DNA of 64,000 nt from Podarcis muralis (GCF_964188315.1 NC_135659.1:9176001-9240000), one strand, 5' to 3'; counted from the stretch's first letter, positions 12,720-64,000 are shown. Notes: generated by a model from the letters alone, not told the origin. Translations and numbers: made by a program.

Positions 12720-12861
12720 NNNNNNNNNNNNNNNNNNNNNNNNNNNNNNNNNNNNNNNNNNNNNNNNNNNNNNNNNNNNNNNNNNNNNNNNNNNNNNNNN
12801 NNNNNNNNNNNNNNNNNNNNNNNNNNNNNNNNNNNNNNNNNNNNNNNNNNNNNNNNNNNNN
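12720..12861. other. Assembly gap (142 N)
   Basis: Run of N bases. Confidence 0.99.
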
Positions 12862-26467: not shown

Positions 26468-26962
26468 GCATCTTACAAAGCAGAGACATCACCTTGCCAA
26501 CAAAGGTCCGTATAGTTAAAGCTATGGTTTTCCCAGTTGTGATGTATGGAAGTGAGAGCTGGACCATAAAGAAGGCTGATCGCCGAAGAATGGATGCTTT
26601 TGAATTATGGTGCTGGAGGAGACTCTTGAGAGTCCCATGGATCGCAAGAAGATCAAACCTATGCATTCTTAAGGAAATCAGCCCTGACTGCTCACTGGAA
26701 GGACAGATCCTGAAGCTGAGACTCCAAAACTTTGGCCACCTCATGAGAAGAGAAGACTCCCTGGCAAAGACCCTGATGTTGGGAAAGATGGAGGGCACAA
26801 GGAGAAGGGGACGACAGAGGACGAGATGGTTGGACAGTGTTCTCGAAGCTACCAGCATGAGTTTGACCAAACTGTGGGAGGCCTTGGAAGACAGGAGTGC
26901 CTGGTGTGCTCTGGCCCATGGGGTCACGAAGAGTCGGACACGACTAAACTAAACAACAACAA
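26468..26962 (+). mobile_element. RTE-BovB LINE 3' fragment
   Basis: Open frame [26 protein letters not shown]... and a 14-bp TSD cagagcaaatggca (26454-26467 / 26963-26976). Confidence 0.94.
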
Positions 26963-41920: not shown

Positions 41921-42453
41921 TTGTTGTTGTTGTTTAGTCGTTTAGTCGCGTCCGACTCTTCGTGACCCCCTGGACCAGAGCACGCCAGGCACTCCTGTCT
42001 TCCACTGCCTCCCACAGTTTGGTCAAACTCATGCTGGTAGCTTCGAGAACACCATCCAACCATCTCGTCCTCTGTCGTCCCCTTCTCCTTGTGCCCTCCA
42101 TCTTTCCCAACATCAGGGTCTTTTCCAGGGAGTTTTCTCTTCTCATGAGGTGGCCAAAGTATTGGAGCCTCAGCTTCAGGATCTGTTCTTCCAGTGAGCA
42201 CTCAGGGTTGATTGCCTTCAGAATGGATAGGTTTGATCTTCTTGCAGTCCATGGGACTCTCAAGAGTCTCCTCCAGCACCATAATTCAAAAGCATCAATT
42301 CTTTGGTGACCAGCCTTCTTTATGGTCCAGCTCTCACTTCCATACATCACTACTGGGAAAACCATAGGTTTAACTATACGGACCTTTGTTGGCAAGGTGA
42401 TGTCTCTGCTTTTTAAGATGCTGTCTAGGCTTGTCATTGCTTTTCTCCCAAGA
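41921..42453 (-). mobile_element. RTE-BovB LINE 3' fragment
   Basis: Open frame [27 protein letters not shown]... and an 11-bp TSD tccattaaaat (41910-41920 / 42454-42464). Confidence 0.94.
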
Positions 42454-42649
42454 TCCATTAAAATAGTGTGAGTCATTTCAAACCAGTTAGCCTGTTGTGA
42501 GAAGAGAAAATATTGGTTAGTCAATATAATGCCGCCGCTCCGCCCCCCCGCCCAGTTTTGTGGAATACAGCTTCCACCATCTCTATAGCTGAGGATGATG
42601 GGAATTGTAGTCCACAAAAATCTCTGGAAGGCACTATTTTGGGATTTGT

Positions 42650-45010: not shown

Positions 45011-46079
45011 CCATTACTTGAGAAGAATGGACTGTGGAACTCCTTGTCAAGAGACTGGGAGGCCTCTTTTGCCCCTTCTGACAGCCTGTTGCTGCTGTGC
45101 AAAAACATTACAGGCAGGCGCTTAACCTGCCCATCTGTTCTTTTTCATTCCCTTGCCTTGTTCATGGAAGTCTTTTATCTGCCGCCTCTTTTATTTGCTG
45201 CCACCGCCTTTTAATTTTTTTATTGTTTAGCAGGATTTAGATCGTACACTAGCTTGAGCATCTCTTTGAATGGAAGGGTAGCATCTTCTTTTGTAAATAA
45301 TTTTAACATTTTATCTTAAGCATCTCAAATTGCTTTCGAGCTTATCCCTTTCAAAGCAGTTTCAAAGCTCTTACACATCTTATGAAAACGTCCAAAAGAA
45401 GAGCGTCTTTGGATTCTTTCGCTTTTGCCTTTATCTTGTATTCCCCACCCCCACCCCCGAACTGCTCTGAGAGCTTTGGATGAAGGGTGGTATACAAATG
45501 TAATAAATAATAATAATAATAGCCAGAGAGAGAACAAGAGAGCTGTGCCTCTGTATGTTTTGGAATGATGTCGCTTTTTTAAGAAGCTCAGTCCTACGAA
45601 CAAATGCAAAAGCTGCAGGCCGCATCCTTGCAGAGCCCTGAACTTCGGCTCAAAGCAAAACTCGGAGTGTATAAATATGGAGAGACTCACCTGGCACTAC
45701 CATTACATAGCTATAGGTGCAAGGAGAAAACATTCTTCTTTACCATGGGTGTAGACAGGATTTTGTTGGGGGGGGGGGGGCAGAACCGAGTTATGTGCAA
45801 CGCAGTTGATCAGATAAAGTTAAATAGCCAGCTGTTCTCTTTGGTGGTATCCTGAGATTGCCGTCGCCCATCTTTTTAGGACCACTTTTGTTTGAGACAG
45901 AAGCATCCCATCATTATTATTTATTGAATTTATATACCGCCCTATAACTGGAGGTCTCGGGGCAGTTCTTTCCCTGGGGAGCTTTAGATAAAGGGCAGTG
46001 TAGTCACAGCAATAATAATTAGTAATACTAATAATAATTCTTTTTCAGCCTCCCCCCTTCTCTTCAGAGCGGACTTCGC

Positions 46080-46080
<1 letters not shown>

Positions 46081-46123
<43 letters not shown>

Positions 46124-46124
46124 T
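46081..46124. repeat. (TAA)n microsatellite abutting the CpG island
   Basis: About 14 trinucleotide units. Confidence 0.95.
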
Positions 46125-46139
46125 CTTTTTCAGCTCCCC

Positions 46140-46560
46140 CCCCCCTTCGCCTCCTGCCTCGTCGCCCCCAACCTCCGAGGTCTTTTCCAACTCCAGCCAT
46201 CATCTCCCTGAGAGAGAGAAGGGCGCATTCCTGAAGGGCAGCCAGCGGCCGCTGAGAGAGAGCCAGAGCCAGCCCGCTTCCTCCCTCCTCCTCCTCCTCC
46301 TCCTCCGCCATCCCTCTCTCCCTCCCTTCTCCGGGGTTTCAGGAGCGAGCAGCGGCCTTTCCAGCTTCGCCCCCCTCAGCCGCCTCGCCAGAGCCTCGGC
46401 CTCCCTGCCGGCCCAGTCAAGACCGGCGAGGCCTGGCGCCGCGGCCTAGTCGTGAGCGGGAGCGCCGGGCTCGCGTTCCCCGGCATGCCGCTCTCAGGTC
46501 CCAAGGGCGCAGGGGGCTTTGCCTGGCTGGGGAAAGAGGCCGAGTGCTCCTCCCTACATC
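46140..46560 (+). promoter_or_regulatory. KIAA1614: CpG island, probable KIAA1614 promoter / first (non-coding?) exon
   Basis: Sharp local rise in GC and CpG, with (CCT)n and GC boxes, about 5 kb upstream of the first coding exon. Candidate donors are GTGAGC (46452), GTGAGT (46746) and GTGAGC (47011). Confidence 0.7.
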
Positions 46561-47061
46561 TTGAGGCCCTGCTTTTTTGGGGGGCGCCCTCGTTTCCTAA
46601 GCGTGTGCTTTTTTAGATATATGTGTGTATGTAAAAGGATATTTATACGTGCATCTTCTTTGGGCACCCCTGCTCCCTAAGTGTGTGCTATATATATATA
46701 TATATATGCATGTATTGGCATCTTTTCTCATTGGCGCATGAGGTGGTGAGTGAAGTGAGAAGAGGCTCCTGGTTTTCTTCAGGGGATGCCAAGAGCTCAA
46801 GAAAAGTCCCTTTTGCCTTTCTGAGCGGCTGCTCCGTCCTTTCAGGTCTTCTGCTGGATCCAGTCGGTGCAAAACTATCTCTCGGGTCTTGGATGGATTT
46901 GGGGAGAATGCCTTCGCAGGGCTGCAAGCCCCGGACTCAGTTGCGCAGGCTGCAGCTGTGCCCATTTCCCCGTCAAGGAAAGTGAAGGGCAGCCGGCCGG
47001 AGAAGGCCTGGTGAGCACAAATCTTCTCCGTCTGTCTCTTTGGAGTGCAAATTCCAGGGGG

Positions 47062-49089
47062 TGCTCTTGTGGGCTTTGCGCTCCCTGGACTTGAATGCAT
47101 GCGCAAGTAGAAGCTTCCTACCGTGGCAGTTACAAATGATGCTCTTGCGGGCCATGCGCTCCCTAGGCTTGCTTGCTGACTTCAATGCATGCGTGAGTAG
47201 AGGTTTCCTGCCATGGTACTGTAGTTAGAAATGATGCTCTTGTGGGCTTTGTGCTCCCTGGACTTGAATGCATGCGCAAGTAGAAGCTTCCTACTGTGGC
47301 AGTTACAAATGATGCTCTTGCGGGCCATGCGCTCTCCAGGCTTGCTTGCTGACTTCAATGCATGCGTGGGTAGAGGTTTCCTACCATGGTACTGTAGTTA
47401 GAAATGATGCTCTTGTGGGCTTTGCGCTCCCTAGACTTGAATGCATGCGCAAGTAGAAGCTTCCTTCCGTGGCAGTTACAAATGATGCTCTTGCGGGCCA
47501 TGCGCTCCCTAGGCTTGCTTGCTGACTTCAATGCATGTGTGAGTAGAGGTTTCCTACCATGGTACTGTAGTTAGAAATGATGCTCTTGTGGGCTTTGCGC
47601 TCCCTAGACTTGAATGCATGCGCAGGTAGAAGCTTCCTACCGTGGCAGTTACAAATGATGCTCTTGCGGGCCATGCGCTCCCCAGGCTTGCTTGCTGAGT
47701 TCAATGCATGCGTGAGTAGAGGTTTCCTGCCATGGTACTGTAGTTAGAAATGATGCTCTTGTGGGCTTTGTGCTCCCTGGACTTGAATGCATGCGCAAGT
47801 AGAAGCTTCCTACCGTGGCAGTTACAAATGATGCTCTTGCGGGCCATGCGCTCCCTAGGCTTGCTTGCTGACTTCAATGCATGCGTGAGTAGAGGTTTCC
47901 TGCCATGGTACTGTAGTTAGAAATGATGCTCTTGTGGGCTTTGCGCTCCCTGGACTTGAATGCATGCGCAAGTAGAAGCTTCCTACCGTGGCAGTTACAA
48001 ATGATGCTGTTGCGGGCCATGCACTCCCTAGGCTTGCTTGCTGACTTCAATGCATGCGTGAGTAGAGGTTTCCTGCCATGGTACTGTAGTTAGAAATGAT
48101 GCTCTTGTGGGCTTTGTGCTCCCTGGACTTGAATGCATGCGCAAGTAGAAGCTTCCTACTGTGGCAGTTACAAATGATGCTCTTGCGGGCCATGCGCTCT
48201 CCAGGCTTGCTTGCTGACTTCAATGCATGCGTGGGTAGAGGTTTCCTACCATGGTACTGTAGTTAGAAATGATGCTCTTGTGGGCTTTGCGCTCCCTAGA
48301 CTTGAATGCATGCGCAAGTAGAAGCTTCCTTCCGTGGCAGTTACAAATGATGCTCTTGCGGGCCATGCGCTCCCTAGGCTTGCTTGCTGACTTCAATGCA
48401 TGTGTGAGTAGAGGTTTCCTACCATGGTACTGTAGTTAGAAATGATGCTCTTGTGGGCTTTGCGCTCCCTAGACTTGAATGCATGCGCAGGTAGAAGCTT
48501 CCTACCGTGGCAGTTACAAATGATGCTCTTGCGGGCCATGCGCTCCCCAGGCTTGCTTGCTGAGTTCAATGCATGCGTGAGTAGAGGTTTCCTACCATGG
48601 TACTGTAGTTAGAAATGATGCTCTTGTGGGCTTTGCGCTCCCTAGACTTGAATGCATGCACAAGTAATAGCTTCCTACCGTGGCAGTTACAAATGATGCT
48701 CTTGCGGGCCATGCGCTCCCTAGGCTTGCTTGCTGACTTCAGTGCATGCGTGGGTAGAGGTTTCCTACCATGGTACAGTGGCCCGTTCCAGAGGCCCGTT
48801 CACACGTGAGCAGAAAGCAACCCACGTCTGCATGTGTCATGATTCGCTGCTTCTGCGCATGCGCGTGATGTCATTTTGTGTGTCTGCGCATGCGCAAGCG
48901 GCGAAACCCAGAAGTAACCCTTTCCGATACTTCCGGGTCGCCGCAGGATGCAACCTGAAAACGCTGAAGCAAACGCAATATGAGGTATGACTGTACTGTA
49001 GTTATTTCTGATGCTTTTGTGGGCTTTGCGCTCCCTAGACTTGAATGCATGCGCAAGCAGAAGCTTCCTACTGTGGCAGTTACAAATGA
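47062..49089. repeat. 173-bp tandem array (~10.4 units; 78+95 bp subunits; 865-bp higher-order repeat), interrupted by a MITE
   Basis: The gtagtta anchor recurs at 47221, 47394, 47567, 47740, 47913, 48086, 48259, 48432 and 48605, an exact 173-bp period. Confidence 0.97.
48776..48993. mobile_element. Tigger/pogo-like MITE with rearranged left end, inserted at a TA of the array
   Basis: Right TIR gaggtatgactg|ta. TA duplicated (48774-48775 / 48994-48995). The array resumes in register on the right. Confidence 0.8.
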
Positions 49090-51391
49090 GGCTGGGGCTC
49101 GGATGGAGAAAGTGAGGCAACAGCTGCTGGCTCAAGAATTTGGTTGTGTGCAAGCGAGATGGTGGTTCAGCAGGGCAAGTTGATGGGTCCCGAACCTCAA
49201 ATGAAGTTGGTTTGAAACCAAGAGCTCGGTCTTGTTTCTCTTTCTACAGCAGTGGCTCTCAAAGGGTGCGGTGTGCCACATTGGTGTGGCAGGAGGACAG
49301 GATGGCAAATGTGGAGCATCCATGGTGTGTAGCACCATCGTCTTGCATTTTTCATTGCAGGGGTGGTTTCTTGGAAGAACTCTCGTTCTTTCCCTCCCGG
49401 TTTGCTGTGATTAGTGTCCCTGAGCCAGTCCGGGGGCAGCTATTAAGTGTTTCAGAACGCCCCCCAGCCAATCGCGTCATTTTTTTGTGCGGTGCAGAAA
49501 CCATGGTTTGTAGCGATGCATGAACATGGCCATGGTTTCCTCTGCTTTGAAAACGAGGATAGCTACACACAGCTTGCATTGGCTTCTGACACATTCTCCG
49601 TTAAACCGTGTTGCCCTGTTCTAAATCCAAATTGTGCATAATAGGCAGTGGGACGGTGCAAAAGTAATAAGGAAACTGTTCTTTTCCATGCCTTTGAAAA
49701 GAGCGGCATGAACGTGCCTGTTGCCATGGGCACAGTGCTCGCTCCTTTTTCATGCTTGCCTGCTTGTCGCCGCTGCAACAACCCAGTAGAGCAGCAAGCG
49801 GGAAAAGAAGCTCTTAATTCCATGGCCCCCTCCTTTGCAAACCTTTTTCCAAGCTGGAGTATATTTCAGATGTTTAAAGCATGCTGTGGACATTGTTGAG
49901 ATAGCTTTGTTGGAGATGGCTGTGGAAGTTGATAACTGGGAGGGGTGCAGCTGAGAATGTGACCCTGCAGCCCTGTTTTGCCCCCTCCCTCAGTGCTGTA
50001 GCATCAAAACTGCAAGTTGTGTAGTACCGTTTTATTTGCTGGCCAGATTATCCATGGATTGAGGAAATCCAAATATAGCAGGTGGAAAGTGTGGATTGCC
50101 GCATGGATGAGGAGGATGTTTTGTAGATGTGACAAAAAAGGAGACACAAGATGTTTCTAAATCCACATTAAACTCCAGTGTTGATGAGACCCTACGAAGG
50201 GGTGAGTTGCTTTTGGGGGGGTTAATTGTGCCCCAAAGCACCACTCCTGAAGAACAAGAAAAGTAACTCAGCAAGACCCCAAATTACTCTTTCTCCTACT
50301 TACTGTGTTATGATTTTGCTGTGAGCCATTCTCCGAATCAGAGAGTTCTGACTAGAGAAAGAGAGAGAGATCTCTCTCTAGTAGAGAGATCTGCACTATC
50401 TGTTATTTCTATGTGATGGAACATGGAAAATTATTCTGTGAATTCCTTACATCTGGAAAGCCAACAGTTGTACTAAGCTCACTGTGACAGCTACTAGTTA
50501 TGATATAGTAGGGCCTTCTCTATCCCATGATTTTGCCAAAATTAAGGAGGGGCACCAAATTTTTGCTATTGCTTGGAATATCTTTTCTTCCAAAGACTCT
50601 CTTTGCTTTTTAAAAAAAGGAAGTTTCTGGGTAGAGTTCATACTGTGTGCGAATCACTTTGCGAAATCTCAGGAATCAAGTGTGGGTCTGAATGAGGTGC
50701 AAAACAATCAGGATTGTGTGTGTTGTGATTCTGCAGGCATGCAGTAAAACCGTGCAGTGTGGTCCTACTTGGAATTAAGGCCCATTGAATTCAATGAGAC
50801 TTGCTCCAAGGTAAATGCATTTAAGATTCCAGCCATGAAATGTGGTATGGGATGCAGAATGGGCCTTTCTGAGGTTCTCTGCTTTCATTTGCAAAACAAG
50901 GAAGTTTCTTTCAGCTGCTAATAGATATATGCTTCAAAGAATGGCTGCTTAGTGCTGGCTGAATAAATGACCAGGTGGCTATGAGCAGGTGCCCTGCAAA
51001 ACTCCTTGCACTTTCATATGACCCAGCAAAACCAGAATATATTAGGCAAAATAATAAAACTGAAGACTAAATTATGTTAAATTGCTGTTTGCTCTATTTA
51101 CATAATGCATGTAGACTGTAAGATTCTGCTTTTCTCGGCAGAAAATCTGGATTATGATTTGGGTATGTAGTAAATATGACCCTGGGAGTGACTACAGAGT
51201 GGGCCTTTAATTCTCACTGTGCTGCTTTTCTGTCCCCGAGGTTGGAGAGAACAGAATAAATGGAGTAAAATCAACGAAATACGTAAATTTGTACAATTTA
51301 GGCAGGATTTATTTTGTGCAGAATTTTGATTATCTTGAATAATTATGGATATTTGAATGCAGAGCATGAAACCCTCTATCTGGGTCCCTCT

Positions 51392-51499
51392 TAGGTTGGC
51401 CAGATGCAAAAGAGAACAGAGGTATTGCACCTTTGATAATTCCCAATTCTAGACAACTATTAAAGGTGCAGGGGCCCTGTCCTCTTTTAGCCAACCCTG
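51392..51499. mobile_element. Fold-back MITE, hAT/Tip100-like termini
   Basis: taggttggcca...aaaagagaacag...tgcacctttg versus aaaggtgca...ctgtcctctttt.gccaaccctg. Confidence 0.55.
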
Positions 51500-51608
51500 C
51501 CCCCTGGTAAGGCCCTTCAGACAATGTTCTCTTGCCCAGCAATCGTATTGAAACGTCTGTTATTGTTTCCCCCACGAAAAAGGTACCTCACCACCTGGAA
51601 GTGGGAGC

Positions 51609-52575
51609 ATGGAAGGGAATTTCGCTACTGAAAAGAGAAGGACGCTGAACACCTTGAAGCAATGTGTCAGAAATATTCCTAGAGCGAAACAGCCCCCCGA
51701 GAACATTGATGATACAGGGGAGCATTGTCTCAACGGGCCATCCTGGGTTCCACTGGGGCTGCTGCGGGATTCAAGCAAGGGCACTTCTGTTCTGGAGTCC
51801 AAAGTTAAAGCTCTGAAAGAGAAGAGGAGTGCCGTCCACAGGCAGGCGGAGGCAGCACCCCAGGAGCGGGCTTCTCCCAAAAAGGCCAAGGCCCGGAAAG
51901 GGAAGCCGCTGACGGAGCCTGCTCCTCAGGATGCTGTGGTGGAACCTCAGGCCCAGATCCGCACCTACCTGACAGATGTGCTGCTGGACAGCACTGACTA
52001 CCCACGTCTCAAGCAGGAGGGATCTCAAGGGGCAGTACGTACAAGCCTGCTTGTTGACGACTTTGAACCTCTGAAGGGGTCTAAGGCGGCAGAAGAGCCT
52101 GCAGGCATGGGCTGGAGCTCACCCGAGGCATTCCAGAGGCTTCCAGGAAGCGACAGGATGGATAAAAGGGGCTCGTCAGGAAATGCAAAAAGGGCATCGC
52201 AGAATGGCCTCTGTGGGGCCAGCTCCTTAAAGGACCTTTCCTTCAACCAGAAATATTTTGAGGATGCAAACGGCAGAGAAGAGCACCTGGTTCATGGTAT
52301 GGATTTCGAAAGCGGTCCTTTTCTCCACAAAGATGACGCCTGTGGGGCGGGAACAACCGGCCGCCTTTGGCGAACCGAGAGCTGGGACAGTCTCTGCAGC
52401 GGCGGAAGCAATGCCAGCACCCTGTCCCTGGCAGAGAGAGTGGAGAGGAACCGGTCGATGCTGCAGGAAATGTTGAGCGCGACGCAGTTTAATAGCCATT
52501 CCTTGCGGGAGCTGCATACTCTGCGTCATCACAAGAAGGATGGCCCAGGCCGTGGGAGAGATGGGCCCAGTAACG
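51609..52575 (+). CDS. KIAA1614: KIAA1614 coding exon beginning at probable start codon (MEG...SVLESKVKALKEK...LSLAERVERNRSMLQEML...)
   Basis: Motifs SVLESKV(K/R)ALKEK and LS(L/A)..RVERNR..LQEML match KIAA1614. Strong Kozak context (AGCATGG), in-frame TGA 60 nt upstream, acg|gtatgt donor. Confidence 0.88.
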
Positions 52576-52674
52576 GTATGTGGAAGCAGGGTGAAGAGGT
52601 TTTCAGAAACCGAACAGGATTTGCAACTTGGATGGGTAGTAGTGGGGAGAAATACTGTGAGAGTTCAGAAAGTA

Positions 52675-56704: not shown

Positions 56705-58330
56705 GAATCATAGAATCATAGAATCATAGAGTTGGAAGAGACCACAAGGGCCATCGAGTCCAACCCCCTGCCAAGCAGGAAACACCATCAGAGCACTCCT
56801 GACATATGGTTGTCAAGCCTCTGCTTAAAGACCTCCAAAGAAGGAGACTCCACCACACTCCGTGGCAGCAAATTCCACTGTCGAACAGCTCTTACTGTCA
56901 GGAAGTTCTTCCTAATGTTTAGGTGGAATCTTCTTTCTTGTAGTTTGGATCCATTGCTCCGTGTCCGCTTCTCTGGAGCAGCAGAAAACAGCCTTTCTCC
57001 CTCCTCTATGTGACATCCTTTTATATATTTGAACATGGCTATCATATCACCCCTTAACCTCCTCTTCTCCAGGCTAAACATGCCCAGCTCCCTTAGCCGT
57101 TCCTCATAAGGCATCATTTCCAGGCCTTTGACCATTTTGGTTGCCCTCCTCTGGACACGTTCCAGTTTGTCAGTGTCCTTCTTGAACTGTGGTGCCCAGA
57201 ACTGGACACAGTACTCCAGGTGAGGTCTGACCAGAGCAGAATACAGTGGCACTATTACTTCCCTTGATCTAGATGCTATACTCCTATTGATGAGGCCCAG
57301 AATTGCATTGGCTTTTTTAGCTGCCGCGTCACACTGTTGGCTCATGTCAAGTTTGTGGTCAACCAAGACTCCTAGATCCTTTTCACATGTGCTGCTCTCA
57401 AGCCAGGTGTCACCCATCTTGTATTTGTGCCTCTCATTTTTTTTGCCCAAGTGCAATACTTTACATTTCTCCCTGTTAAAATTCATCTTGTTTGTTTTGG
57501 CCCAGTTCTCTAATCTGTCAAGGTCGTTTTGAAGTGTGATCCTGTCCTCTGGGGTGTTAGCCACCCCTCCCAGTTTGGTGTCATCTGCAAATTTGATCAG
57601 GATGCCCTTGAGTCCATCATCCAAGTCGTTGATAAAGATGTTGAATAAGACCGGGCCCAGGACAGAACCCTGTGGCACCCCACTAGTCACTCTTCTCCAG
57701 GATGAAGAGGAACCATTGATGAGCACCCTTTGGGTTCGGTCAGTCAGCCAGTTACAAATCCACTGAGTGGTAGCATAGTCAAGACCGCATTTTACCAGCT
57801 TCTTTACAAGAATATCATGGGGCACCTTGTCAAATGCCTTGCTGAAATCAAGGTAGACTACATCCACTGCGTTCCCTTCATCTACCAGGCTTGTAATTCT
57901 GTCAAAAAACGAGATCAGGTTAGTCTGACATGACTTATTTTTCAGAAATCCATGCTGACTATTGGTGATCACAGCATTCCTTTCTAGGTGCTCACAGACT
58001 GTTTGCTTAATGATCTGCTCCAGAATCTTCCCTAGTATTGATGTCAGACTGACTGGGCGGTAATTATTTGGGTCCTCTCTTTTCCCCTTTTTGAAAATAG
58101 GGACAACATTTGCCCTCCTCCAGTCTGCCGGGACTTCGCCTGTTCTCCAGGAATTCTCAAAGATGACTGCCAGTGGTTCTGAAATCACATCTGCCAGTTC
58201 TTTTAATACTCTTGGATGCAGTTCATCTGGCCCTGGAGACTTGAATACATCTAGACTAGCCAAGTATTCTTGTACTATCTCCTTAGTTATTCTGGGCTGT
58301 GTTTCCTCTGCTGAATCATTTGCTCCAAAT
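56705..58330 (-). mobile_element. CR1 LINE, 5'-truncated, uninterrupted ORF2 reverse-transcriptase region (56788-58263)
   Basis: [32 protein letters not shown] and IKFADD motifs, with a 3' (ATTCTATG)n tail. Confidence 0.96.
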
Positions 58331-61936: not shown

Positions 61937-62097
61937 CTGCAAGTAGAGAAGTTACAAGTACCACCTTGGTAAGCGTCCTGGGTGCTTAGTAAGCCAAGTG
62001 GTGCCCTCTGCCCAGCATTTGGAGGCAGCTCAGTCGGAGGTAAGGATGATCAGTGTGAACAGGCGCACAGTCTTATTCTCTCTGTTGTGTGCCTCAG

Positions 62098-63776
62098 GGA
62101 TGGCTGCGGGATCTCTGCTGCAGACGCAAAGAACTTTGCTCTGAAGGATGGAGACCCCCACGCCGGCGGCAACCTGAGCGACTCGTCCAGCGGGGAATCC
62201 AGCAGCGAGCAGCAAAGGAAGCGAGGGCCGTCCCCGTCCCGAGTGCGTTTCGAGGATGAGTCTGCGCGAGATGCCGAGGTCCGCTACTTGGAGCGCCTGC
62301 AGCTGCGTCAGAAGCGGGTGTTGGATTCCGTCCTTCTGTCTCTGGGCCGTGGCCCGCTGGTCTCCAAACCGGACCTTACGGATTACATCAACGGTGAGCT
62401 TCACCGCAAAGAGAGTGGCGGCGGCGGCAGCAAACCCGGCTGGGAACAGCAAGGCAGCAGGGGGCGCTCCGAGAAGAGGAAGCCTCTGGTGGTCAACGAG
62501 GAAGGCAAGTGCAGCGCATGCGGATCTTACGTCAGGAATCTGGCAGCCAGTCAGAACCCAGATACCGGAGCAAATCAGACTGCGAAGAGCGTGCATCAGT
62601 CTTGCAACATCCCCCGAGAGGGCAAGGAGCTAGGTCGGGCCAATGAAAGCAAAGAGCTCAACGCTACCCAAGAGGACTCGCGAACCAGGGCTTTGGGTCC
62701 CAAAGGAACTCCGCTGTGGATCCTTCCTTCCCGCCAGCGTGTTTACACAGAGCGCATCAAGGAGACGTACATAGGGGAAGTGACTTGCATAGATGAGGTG
62801 GATTCTGCTCTGGACAGCACCACGGATACATCGGACAGCTACAGGACGGACAGCGAGGAGGCTGGTGCCAGCAGCCAACGGTCAGTGGTCAAAAGCTCCC
62901 AGCACCGCGGGCCTGGTCCCGATCCCAGGCCGTTTTCCCCTTCAGAGGGGGAAGCCAAGAACAGGAAGGCCAACGGGGAGAGGCCCAGAGCAGATGGCAG
63001 CTGCCGTGCTAGTGGAGGGGAAATTGTGCCTCGCAGAGGGGAAATTGAATCAAGCGCTAATCAAGCCAGCGACTCTTCCTTGAAGGGGGCCTCTGAAGTC
63101 AGAGATCAGGTGACCAAAATGGCAGCTGGTAAGGCAGAAGTCTTTCCCAGAAGCAGCCAGCCGGTAGATCTGTATCAACTGGTGAAGAAAGGCAGGATGC
63201 AGGAACATCCAAAGCTGTCCAAGGCCCCATTAAAGCAATCCGCACCCTCCTCCCACCCTCAGCAGTTGCCTTCCCATCTGGTCCCTGATGGTGCCGCAGA
63301 CTCCATGAACAAGAAGCCGGTGGAAACTTCCAACCGAACTCGTAGGCCAACGAACAATTTAAGTCAAACCAAGCAAGAGCAGGACTCTTCCCAGCAGCTA
63401 ACTGAAGAGATGAGTGCCGGCTACAACTTTGCTTACCGAGTTCCTGCGCCGCCCACCACTGGAAAAGCCCATCCTTCCCCTATGCCTTACAGGAGGGCTG
63501 CTCTGAGCGGCAGCCACAAGCTCACTAGCCAGGATCCTGGGCGGATGGACCAAGCCAATGAACTATCAATTTACTCGGCCTCCTCTAATAGCTTCCAGGA
63601 GGAGGAGAGTGGCCAGCAGAGTCCAAAGATGCTCTCCAAGAACCAGCTCCTGGCCTTGTCCACCAACAACTGCAACAACACATATGCCAAGCACGAGCCA
63701 AAAACCTTAGGGACTGCTGCAGTGAAGAGCAGAGGGGAGCAGCCCCAGGAGAGACAGAAGCTGGAAAAAAACCAAG
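62098..63776 (+). CDS. KIAA1614: KIAA1614 large exon (SDSSSGESS...RVRFEDESAR...SKPDLTDYING...EVDSALDST...LLALSTNNCNN); gene continues beyond window
   Basis: gcctcag acceptor and aag|gtaaga donor. Several blocks match human KIAA1614. Open frame throughout. Confidence 0.93.
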
Positions 63777-64000
63777 GTAAGAGGTAATGTTGCCCTTTGG
63801 ACAACTGTAGAGAGGGCATCATGGTAGGCCATCCAGCAAGGCAGTTGAGAATTTGTACTCTAGATGATTTGTGCAAGTCAGATTTATTTATTCAGAGTTA
63901 TTGAACTTGCATAGATTTGCTTATTTTGCATGCCTGACCCTGACTGTGAATACAGTATTTAAGTTTTTCCGCAAATTTTGATTAAGGGTACCTTTAGGGT

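Follow-up and report, generated by a model that had tools for sequence, protein, structure and literature searches.

A locus-specific lacertid minisatellite upstream of the KIAA1614 first coding exon, with incipient higher-order structure in Podarcis muralis

Introduction

Locus-specific minisatellites and variable-number tandem repeats (VNTRs) of vertebrate introns and promoters consist of head-to-tail units of tens to hundreds of base pairs at one locus. We describe here a tandem array of Podarcis muralis that resembles them in these features, as well as in its length of approximately 2 kb, its non-coding nature, its quick copy-number change between lineages, and the greater divergence of its edge units. 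The classical minisatellite has a unit of 10-100 bp, whereas the P. muralis unit is a 173-bp heterodimer, and a VNTR is defined by length polymorphism within a species, whereas the copy-number differences known here for the array are those between species (3 to 21 subunits).

The array can also be likened to the higher-order repeats (HORs) of primate alpha satellite, in that diverged monomers (87 % identical) are grouped into an amplified multimer, and the copies of the resulting block are more alike (99.6 %) than are neighboring units (approximately 96 %). In contrast to alpha satellite, the array comprises ten units at one euchromatic genic locus, with two top-level copies and without genome-wide abundance or heterochromatin.

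In squamates, the repeats sSat1-3 form short arrays of 70-290-nt units with low amplification and taxon-specific structures (Vassetzky et al. 2023, PMC10702118), and the present array is similar in these respects. The SINE-derived satellites of squamates are multi-locus (PMC10702118), whereas the array occupies one orthologous locus without a detectable SINE head or dispersed parent, differences from sSat1-3 that concern their description. Satellites described from lacertids include pLHS, pLCS, pGPS, HindIII, and TaqI (PMC7397244), and the period of approximately 170 bp and the HindIII site of the array are superficially like those of the HindIII family. The classical lacertid satellites each account for a share of the genome in the per cent range and lie in centromeric or interstitial heterochromatin (PMC7397244), whereas the array reaches only a few-fold single-copy depth, a comparison made by description. 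A literature search for a 173-bp lizard satellite returned nothing relevant.

As far as tested, the unit represents an undescribed family of a known kind, a locus-specific minisatellite with incipient higher-order structure. The array is thus ordinary in kind, and its value is that of a clean example of tandem-repeat evolution, in which a five-species series at one orthologous locus captures monomers, a dimer unit, and an incipient higher-order block at a euchromatic site, with two independent transposon insertions as time markers. It might serve as a small model of satellite origin or as a length marker for population work on wall lizards, and would have no bearing on KIAA1614 function unless a regulatory effect were shown.

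Locus and gene structure

The window analyzed was a 64,000-nt stretch of P. muralis DNA (GCF_964188315.1, NC_135659.1:9176001-9240000), and positions are counted from its first nucleotide. The following features define the gene context of the array.

46251..46650, no strand assigned: CpG-rich stretch, candidate promoter or CpG island (GC 0.65, o/e 0.71, 29 CpGs)
46907..47010, + strand: candidate 5' exon end, with consensus donor ctg/GTGAGC at 47010/47011; exon start undefined
51583..52575, + strand: KIAA1614 first coding exon, with ATG at 51609, acceptor ...aaaaag/GTACC at 51582/51583, and donor at 52575/52576
62096..63778 (approximate limits), + strand: large KIAA1614 coding exon with DUF4685 (Pfam PF15737, E = 3e-20)

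The first-pass annotation had named the gene as KIAA1614, and this identity was borne out by the DUF4685 match, by homologues carrying the same name, and by exons 100 % identical to the P. muralis protein. The translation of 51609-52580 was 100 % identical to residues 1-322 of the P. muralis KIAA1614 homolog isoform X1, and residues 39-599 of the ORF at 61982-63787 corresponded to residues 420-980 of the P. muralis protein, again with 100 % identity. Alignment with the annotated orthologues, including the protein of the agamid Phrynocephalus, placed their residue 1 at the ATG at 51609.

The array starts 51 nt beyond the donor at 47010/47011 and ends 2.5 kb before the first coding exon. The CpG-rich stretch, which is approximately 82 % identical to its counterparts in Lacerta agilis and Zootoca, ends 412 bp upstream of the array, in keeping with an earlier statement that a CpG island lies about 500 bp from it.

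Contigs from public runs were placed on 46100-52099, and no RNA reads were found on the array. A single stranded RNA read fragment falls in 46900-47099 and is oriented like the exon-2 reads. A 5.9-kb RNA contig matches from 51581 into the first coding exon; the 336 nt that it carries 5' of this match had no counterpart anywhere in 46100-51580, which suggests that the first exon of this transcript lies further upstream and that the array lies in its intron. An annotated two-exon gene model of P. lilfordi (L002 5641-9491), encoding 56 aa, extends from just upstream of the array into the KIAA1614 first coding exon. The model is out of frame relative to the main ORF and looks like an upstream ORF or a 5' UTR artefact; its sole consensus-splice solution joins the donor orthologous to 47010/47011 to the exon-2 acceptor. 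The array had first been placed at the "promoter/intron 1" of KIAA1614. This placement is reasonable, and its intronic half is the better supported by the donor, the acceptor, the P. lilfordi model, and the RNA contig. The array is therefore probably intronic in P. muralis.

Anatomy of the array in P. muralis

The array and the elements within it are as follows.

47062..48776, + strand: tandem array of nine complete 173-bp units (A, 78 bp, plus B, 95 bp), followed by A10 and the first 80 nt of B10
47062..47753, + strand: units 1-4, the first of the two recent duplicate copies (3 of 692 bp mismatched relative to 47927-48618)
47927..48618, + strand: units 6-9, second copy of the recent duplicate (865-bp offset; 99.6 % identity to units 1-4)
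48777..48991, no strand assigned: unclassified high-copy CpG-rich interspersed repeat inside subunit B of unit 10, recognized by word depth and lack of similarity to the unit
48992..49089, + strand: distal remnant, consisting of TGTAC (which may be a target-site duplicate), the last 15 nt of B10, and the terminal A subunit at 49012-49089

Tandem Repeats Finder (TRF) reported 47062-48776 as a repeat of period 173 with 9.9 copies, 96 % matches, and a score of 3171. With B10 completed beyond the interspersed element, the P. muralis array holds ten 173-bp A-B dimers, or 21 subunits when the terminal A is counted. Alignment of the two subunits gave 68 identical positions of 78 (87 %), with additional segments of 12 nt and 5 nt in B, and so reproduced the dimeric unit of the first-pass annotation. 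The same annotation had treated 47062-49089 as one uninterrupted array, and in this it was mistaken, as the array is broken at 48777-48991 by the 215-bp interspersed element.

Units were cut each 173 bp from 47062 and compared by pairwise Hamming distance. Unit 7 was identical to unit 2 and unit 8 to unit 3, while unit 9 differed from unit 4 at one base and unit 6 from unit 1 at two, matching exactly the identities reported beforehand. Units 1, 5, and 6 are near-identical among themselves, and unit 6 carries two variants seen in no other unit. Mean identity was 98.7 % at the five-unit offset and 95.6-96.5 % at all other offsets. Comparison of unit 10 with unit 5 gave 8 differences in 158 bases, placing unit 10 outside the recent duplicate, and the top level is therefore a single two-copy duplication in a five-unit register. 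Either unit 5 or unit 10 was probably altered later by conversion, or lay outside the duplication event.

TRF, the unit distances, the A/B alignment, and the offset identities together support the three-level anatomy. As in satellite HORs, the multimer copies (98.7-99.6 %) are more alike than are dimers (approximately 96 %), and these in turn more than A and B (87 %), with only two copies present at the top level. The 865-bp higher-order repeat thus stands as regards its five-unit register and the 99.6 % identity of units 1-4 to units 6-9, with the qualification that it has only two copies and excludes unit 10.

The most diverged units are those adjoining or beyond the 215-bp insert, and the terminal A has 94 % identity to the unit. 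Thirteen positions of the 173-bp unit are variable, and four of these are transitions at CpG dinucleotides. The short palindromes listed earlier were all present (AAGCTT 10 times, ATGCAT 20 times, and TACCATGGTA 6 times). The CpG o/e of the array is 0.46 versus 0.38 for the whole window; retention of CpGs is thus slightly above background, and the description of the units as keeping "many CpGs" is weakened accordingly, also by the CpG transitions among the variable sites.

Comparison of five lacertid species

The loci of other lacertids were retrieved by way of their KIAA1614 proteins, giving five species including P. muralis. The order of subunits in each is listed below.

Zootoca vivipara: A A A B B A; no insert; 6 subunits
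Lacerta agilis: A B [element] A; a different, 624-bp element; 3 subunits
P. raffonei: A B A B[insert] A; insert as in P. muralis; 5 subunits
P. lilfordi: seven A, B[insert], three A; TRF period 78, not 173; 11 subunits
P. muralis: nine A-B dimers, A, B[insert], A; the array of the window; 21 subunits

The five lacertids share the left junction ...TTCCAGGGGG/TGCTCTTG and the right junction ...AAATGA/GGCT.GGGCTC, and since the same flanks bound the array in all of them, the array has not moved. The terminal A subunit is kept in 5 of 5 species. A tree of the 46 subunits from the five species resolved A and B clades (support 98/93), and within it P. lilfordi A1-A7 formed a species-specific clade (96/94). 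As all five species are represented in both the A clade and the B clade, the A/B split is older than Podarcis, Lacerta, and Zootoca. The array had been taken for a young element, a view contradicted by P. lilfordi, P. raffonei, Lacerta agilis, and Zootoca vivipara, which all carry A and B subunits with the same flanks on either side. Of the five genomes, only that of P. muralis shows the dimer amplification and the 865-bp duplication.

Subunit identity between species was 89-96 %, compared to 89-98 % in the adjacent unique flanks. Subunit divergence is thus about equal to flank divergence, and no extra constraint is seen. In Phrynocephalus (L001) only the coding exon aligned, with no array in the 10 kb upstream, and this agamid was set aside as too distant to be an informative orthologue.

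The interspersed insert and a second element in Lacerta agilis

The 215-bp insert has a CpG o/e of 1.12 and contains two GCGCATGCGC palindromes, a decayed third copy, and one CCGGAAGT motif, a motif content that resembles that of a housekeeping promoter. Its boundary is ambiguous by approximately 5 nt (GGTAC/TGTAC), such that the target-site duplication is either GTAC or an imperfect 5-mer. Summed word depth over the insert was 3.3e5-6.5e5 versus approximately 40-170 in the flanks in one public run (X1), and 2.9e4-5.8e4 versus approximately 10 in a second (X2), these figures being rough as they derive from assembled contigs. Such contig word depth corresponds to thousands of genomic copies at >=90 % likeness, and the insert sequence occurs in RNA libraries as well.

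The insert occupies the identical site in P. lilfordi, at L002 6423-6653, and in P. raffonei, at L003 7093-7329; the Lacerta and Zootoca arrays lack it. Its shared position in P. muralis, P. lilfordi, and P. raffonei indicates that the insertion predates the split of these three species. According to Yang et al. 2021 (PMC8114931), who used a crown-node calibration of 18.6 Mya, the major clades of Podarcis split approximately 16.7-9.8 Mya.

The Lacerta agilis array harbors a separate, GC-rich element of 624 bp (L004 6161-6784) just before the terminal A subunit. This element has an 11-bp TIR (CAGGGCCGTCT / AGACGGCCCTG) and an 8-bp target duplication (AATGATGC), and is hAT-like.

The unit is confined to a single locus

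Searches for further copies of the unit found none in the 64-kb window or in approximately 46 kb around each orthologue, in all approximately 290 kb of lacertid sequence. Word depth in the array was 44-417, compared to 38-170 in the flanks (run X1), which is of the order expected from the ten copies of the array itself. The array is not a genome-wide or dispersed satellite. It is 2 kb long with few-fold single-copy depth, far from the high abundance and long heterochromatic arrays that characterize satellites, and its head-to-tail repeats at one locus, evident from TRF, the lack of other copies, and the depth, are those of a minisatellite. Neither depth nor the local and orthologue searches detected a dispersed family, in agreement with the first reading of the unit as belonging to no known one. 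Scans of metagenome and viral contigs for the unit gave zero matches, as expected.

Several other identities were considered and rejected. The unit is not a coding repeat, with stops in all six frames. The 78-95 nt length of the subunits and their AUGAUGC...CUGA content had suggested a structured RNA; Rfam gave no match for a snoRNA/miRNA cluster beyond chance hits, even at E <= 10, and both strands folded more weakly than their shuffles (z = +2.4 and +2.9). Local alignments of the array with the 215-bp insert and with flanking DNA fell inside the range of shuffled controls, so derivation from either was discarded. Cargo of a DNA transposon was likewise rejected, as no inverted repeat pair brackets 47062-49093 within 45500-50800 and the array is bordered by orthologous unique DNA in each of the five species.

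Origin of the array and alternative explanations

The above considerations make it highly probable that the array is a single-locus, non-coding, neutral minisatellite at the start of the KIAA1614 5' intron, with no function of its own. The persistence of the array at one site across lacertid genera was counted against this explanation. Neutrality is suggested by flank-like divergence over short sequences, in which weak constraint would escape detection.

The history of the array may be outlined as follows. A short A/B minisatellite would already have been present before Podarcis, Lacerta, and Zootoca diverged, and turnover by unequal exchange, which we infer to be the mechanism, or by replication slippage would have led to independent gain and loss of subunits in each lineage. 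The interspersed repeat would then have inserted into a distal B subunit, near the 3' edge, in the Podarcis ancestor, leaving at least one intact B upstream of the insert, since P. muralis and P. raffonei carry intact B subunits. In P. lilfordi the proximal part would have been homogenized with A monomers, while in P. muralis the A-B dimer would have been amplified upstream of the insert to reach ten units. The last step would be the duplication of a block in the five-unit register, with a divergence of 0.4 % between the copies. The greater divergence of units adjoining or beyond the insert would follow from a block to exchange there and from the escape of array edges from homogenization, as expected.

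We weighed as an alternative that the array is a cis-regulatory variable repeat, in which some 20 UGCAUG (RBFOX-type) or transcription-factor sites would tune first-exon choice or KIAA1614 output. TGCATG occurs 22 times in sense and 2 times in antisense orientation within the 2 kb, while the whole 64-kb window has only 40 sense occurrences, and the motif is kept in 44 of the 46 subunits from five species. As in RBFOX-type clusters, these are sense-strand motifs in an intron near a splice site, the closeness of the array to the donor placing the first approximately 85 nt past it. In P. muralis, three protein accessions share one identical isoform X1 sequence, which may reflect several 5' UTR variants. 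On the other hand, the UGCAUG, HindIII, and NcoI sites owe their number solely to the copying of one ancestral subunit, and the UGCAUG count is thus a by-product. Since 13 of the 173 positions vary, 12 motif positions would all remain unchanged with a probability of approximately 0.4; the motifs show no conservation beyond that of the remaining subunit sequence, and the subunits none beyond that of the flanks between species. The array has no RNA coverage, and the 5' exon of the main RNA contig lies outside 46100-51580. We therefore regard a regulatory role as quite unlikely, and the tuning of KIAA1614 expression suggested in the first-pass annotation finds no support. A narrower form of this proposal, in which growth of the array from 3 subunits in L. 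agilis to 21 in P. muralis would provide a dosage-variable platform of UGCAUG or other motifs that alters KIAA1614 first-exon choice or output, appears very improbable; if true, the locus would be a regulatory VNTR evolving in nature, for which the lacertids would supply an orthologous allelic series.

A second alternative derives the unit from a mobile element, either a squamate SINE-derived satellite or a tandem array carried within a DNA transposon, and would make it a member of a dispersed family. Tandem repeats derived from SINEs, with units of 70-290 nt, are present at many squamate loci, including a few in lacertids (PMC10702118). This origin is quite unlikely in view of the lack of a tRNA-like head in the unit and of TIRs, the dissimilarity of the unit to the flanks and the interspersed insert, the lack of a second copy in the lacertid sequence searched, a depth only few-fold over single copy at >=90 % likeness with no dispersed close copies, and the fixed position of the array between the same flanks in five species.

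It is very improbable that the 865-bp duplication, and perhaps the copy number too, is an assembly artefact: the P. muralis array was read from one assembly only (GCA_964188315.1, OZ076958.1, base-for-base identical to the window), is longer than short-read contigs can span, and had at most a 0.60 share of its sampled words in any public run, but the duplicate blocks differ at 3 sites and unit 6 has private variants, neither of which would be expected from a simple error of collapse or expansion. Current long reads are also far longer than a 2-kb array (the assembly was presumably built from long reads, judging by the accession type), and four independent assemblies contain orthologous arrays of like structure.

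Other features of the window

Retrotransposon remains were observed at 41934-42617 (-), 26494-26952 (+), and 56788-58263 (-). Two ORFs share the tail ...RTRWLD...SMSLTKLWE...DRSAWR...SRTRLN, which we take to be typical of BovB/RTE elements; the 41934-42617 ORF matched no family when scanned against Pfam. A 491-aa reverse-transcriptase ORF (Pfam RVT_1) is situated in the intron that separates the first coding exon from the DUF4685 exon. In the same KIAA1614 intron as the array, contig depth rises to approximately 290-850, versus approximately 100, at 49296, 50700-50899, and 51300-51499, stretches that are probably fragments of moderately repeated elements. A run of 142 N at 12720-12861 marks either a gap in the assembly or masked sequence.

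A second variable tandem repeat is found at 46020-46145, at the upstream edge of the CpG-rich stretch, with a unit of (ATA)n plus TTCAGCCTCCCCCCTTCTCTTCAGAGCGGACTTCGC. It has approximately 2 copies in P. muralis and approximately 8.5 copies, with a period of 61-73, in P. lilfordi (L002 4191-4854).
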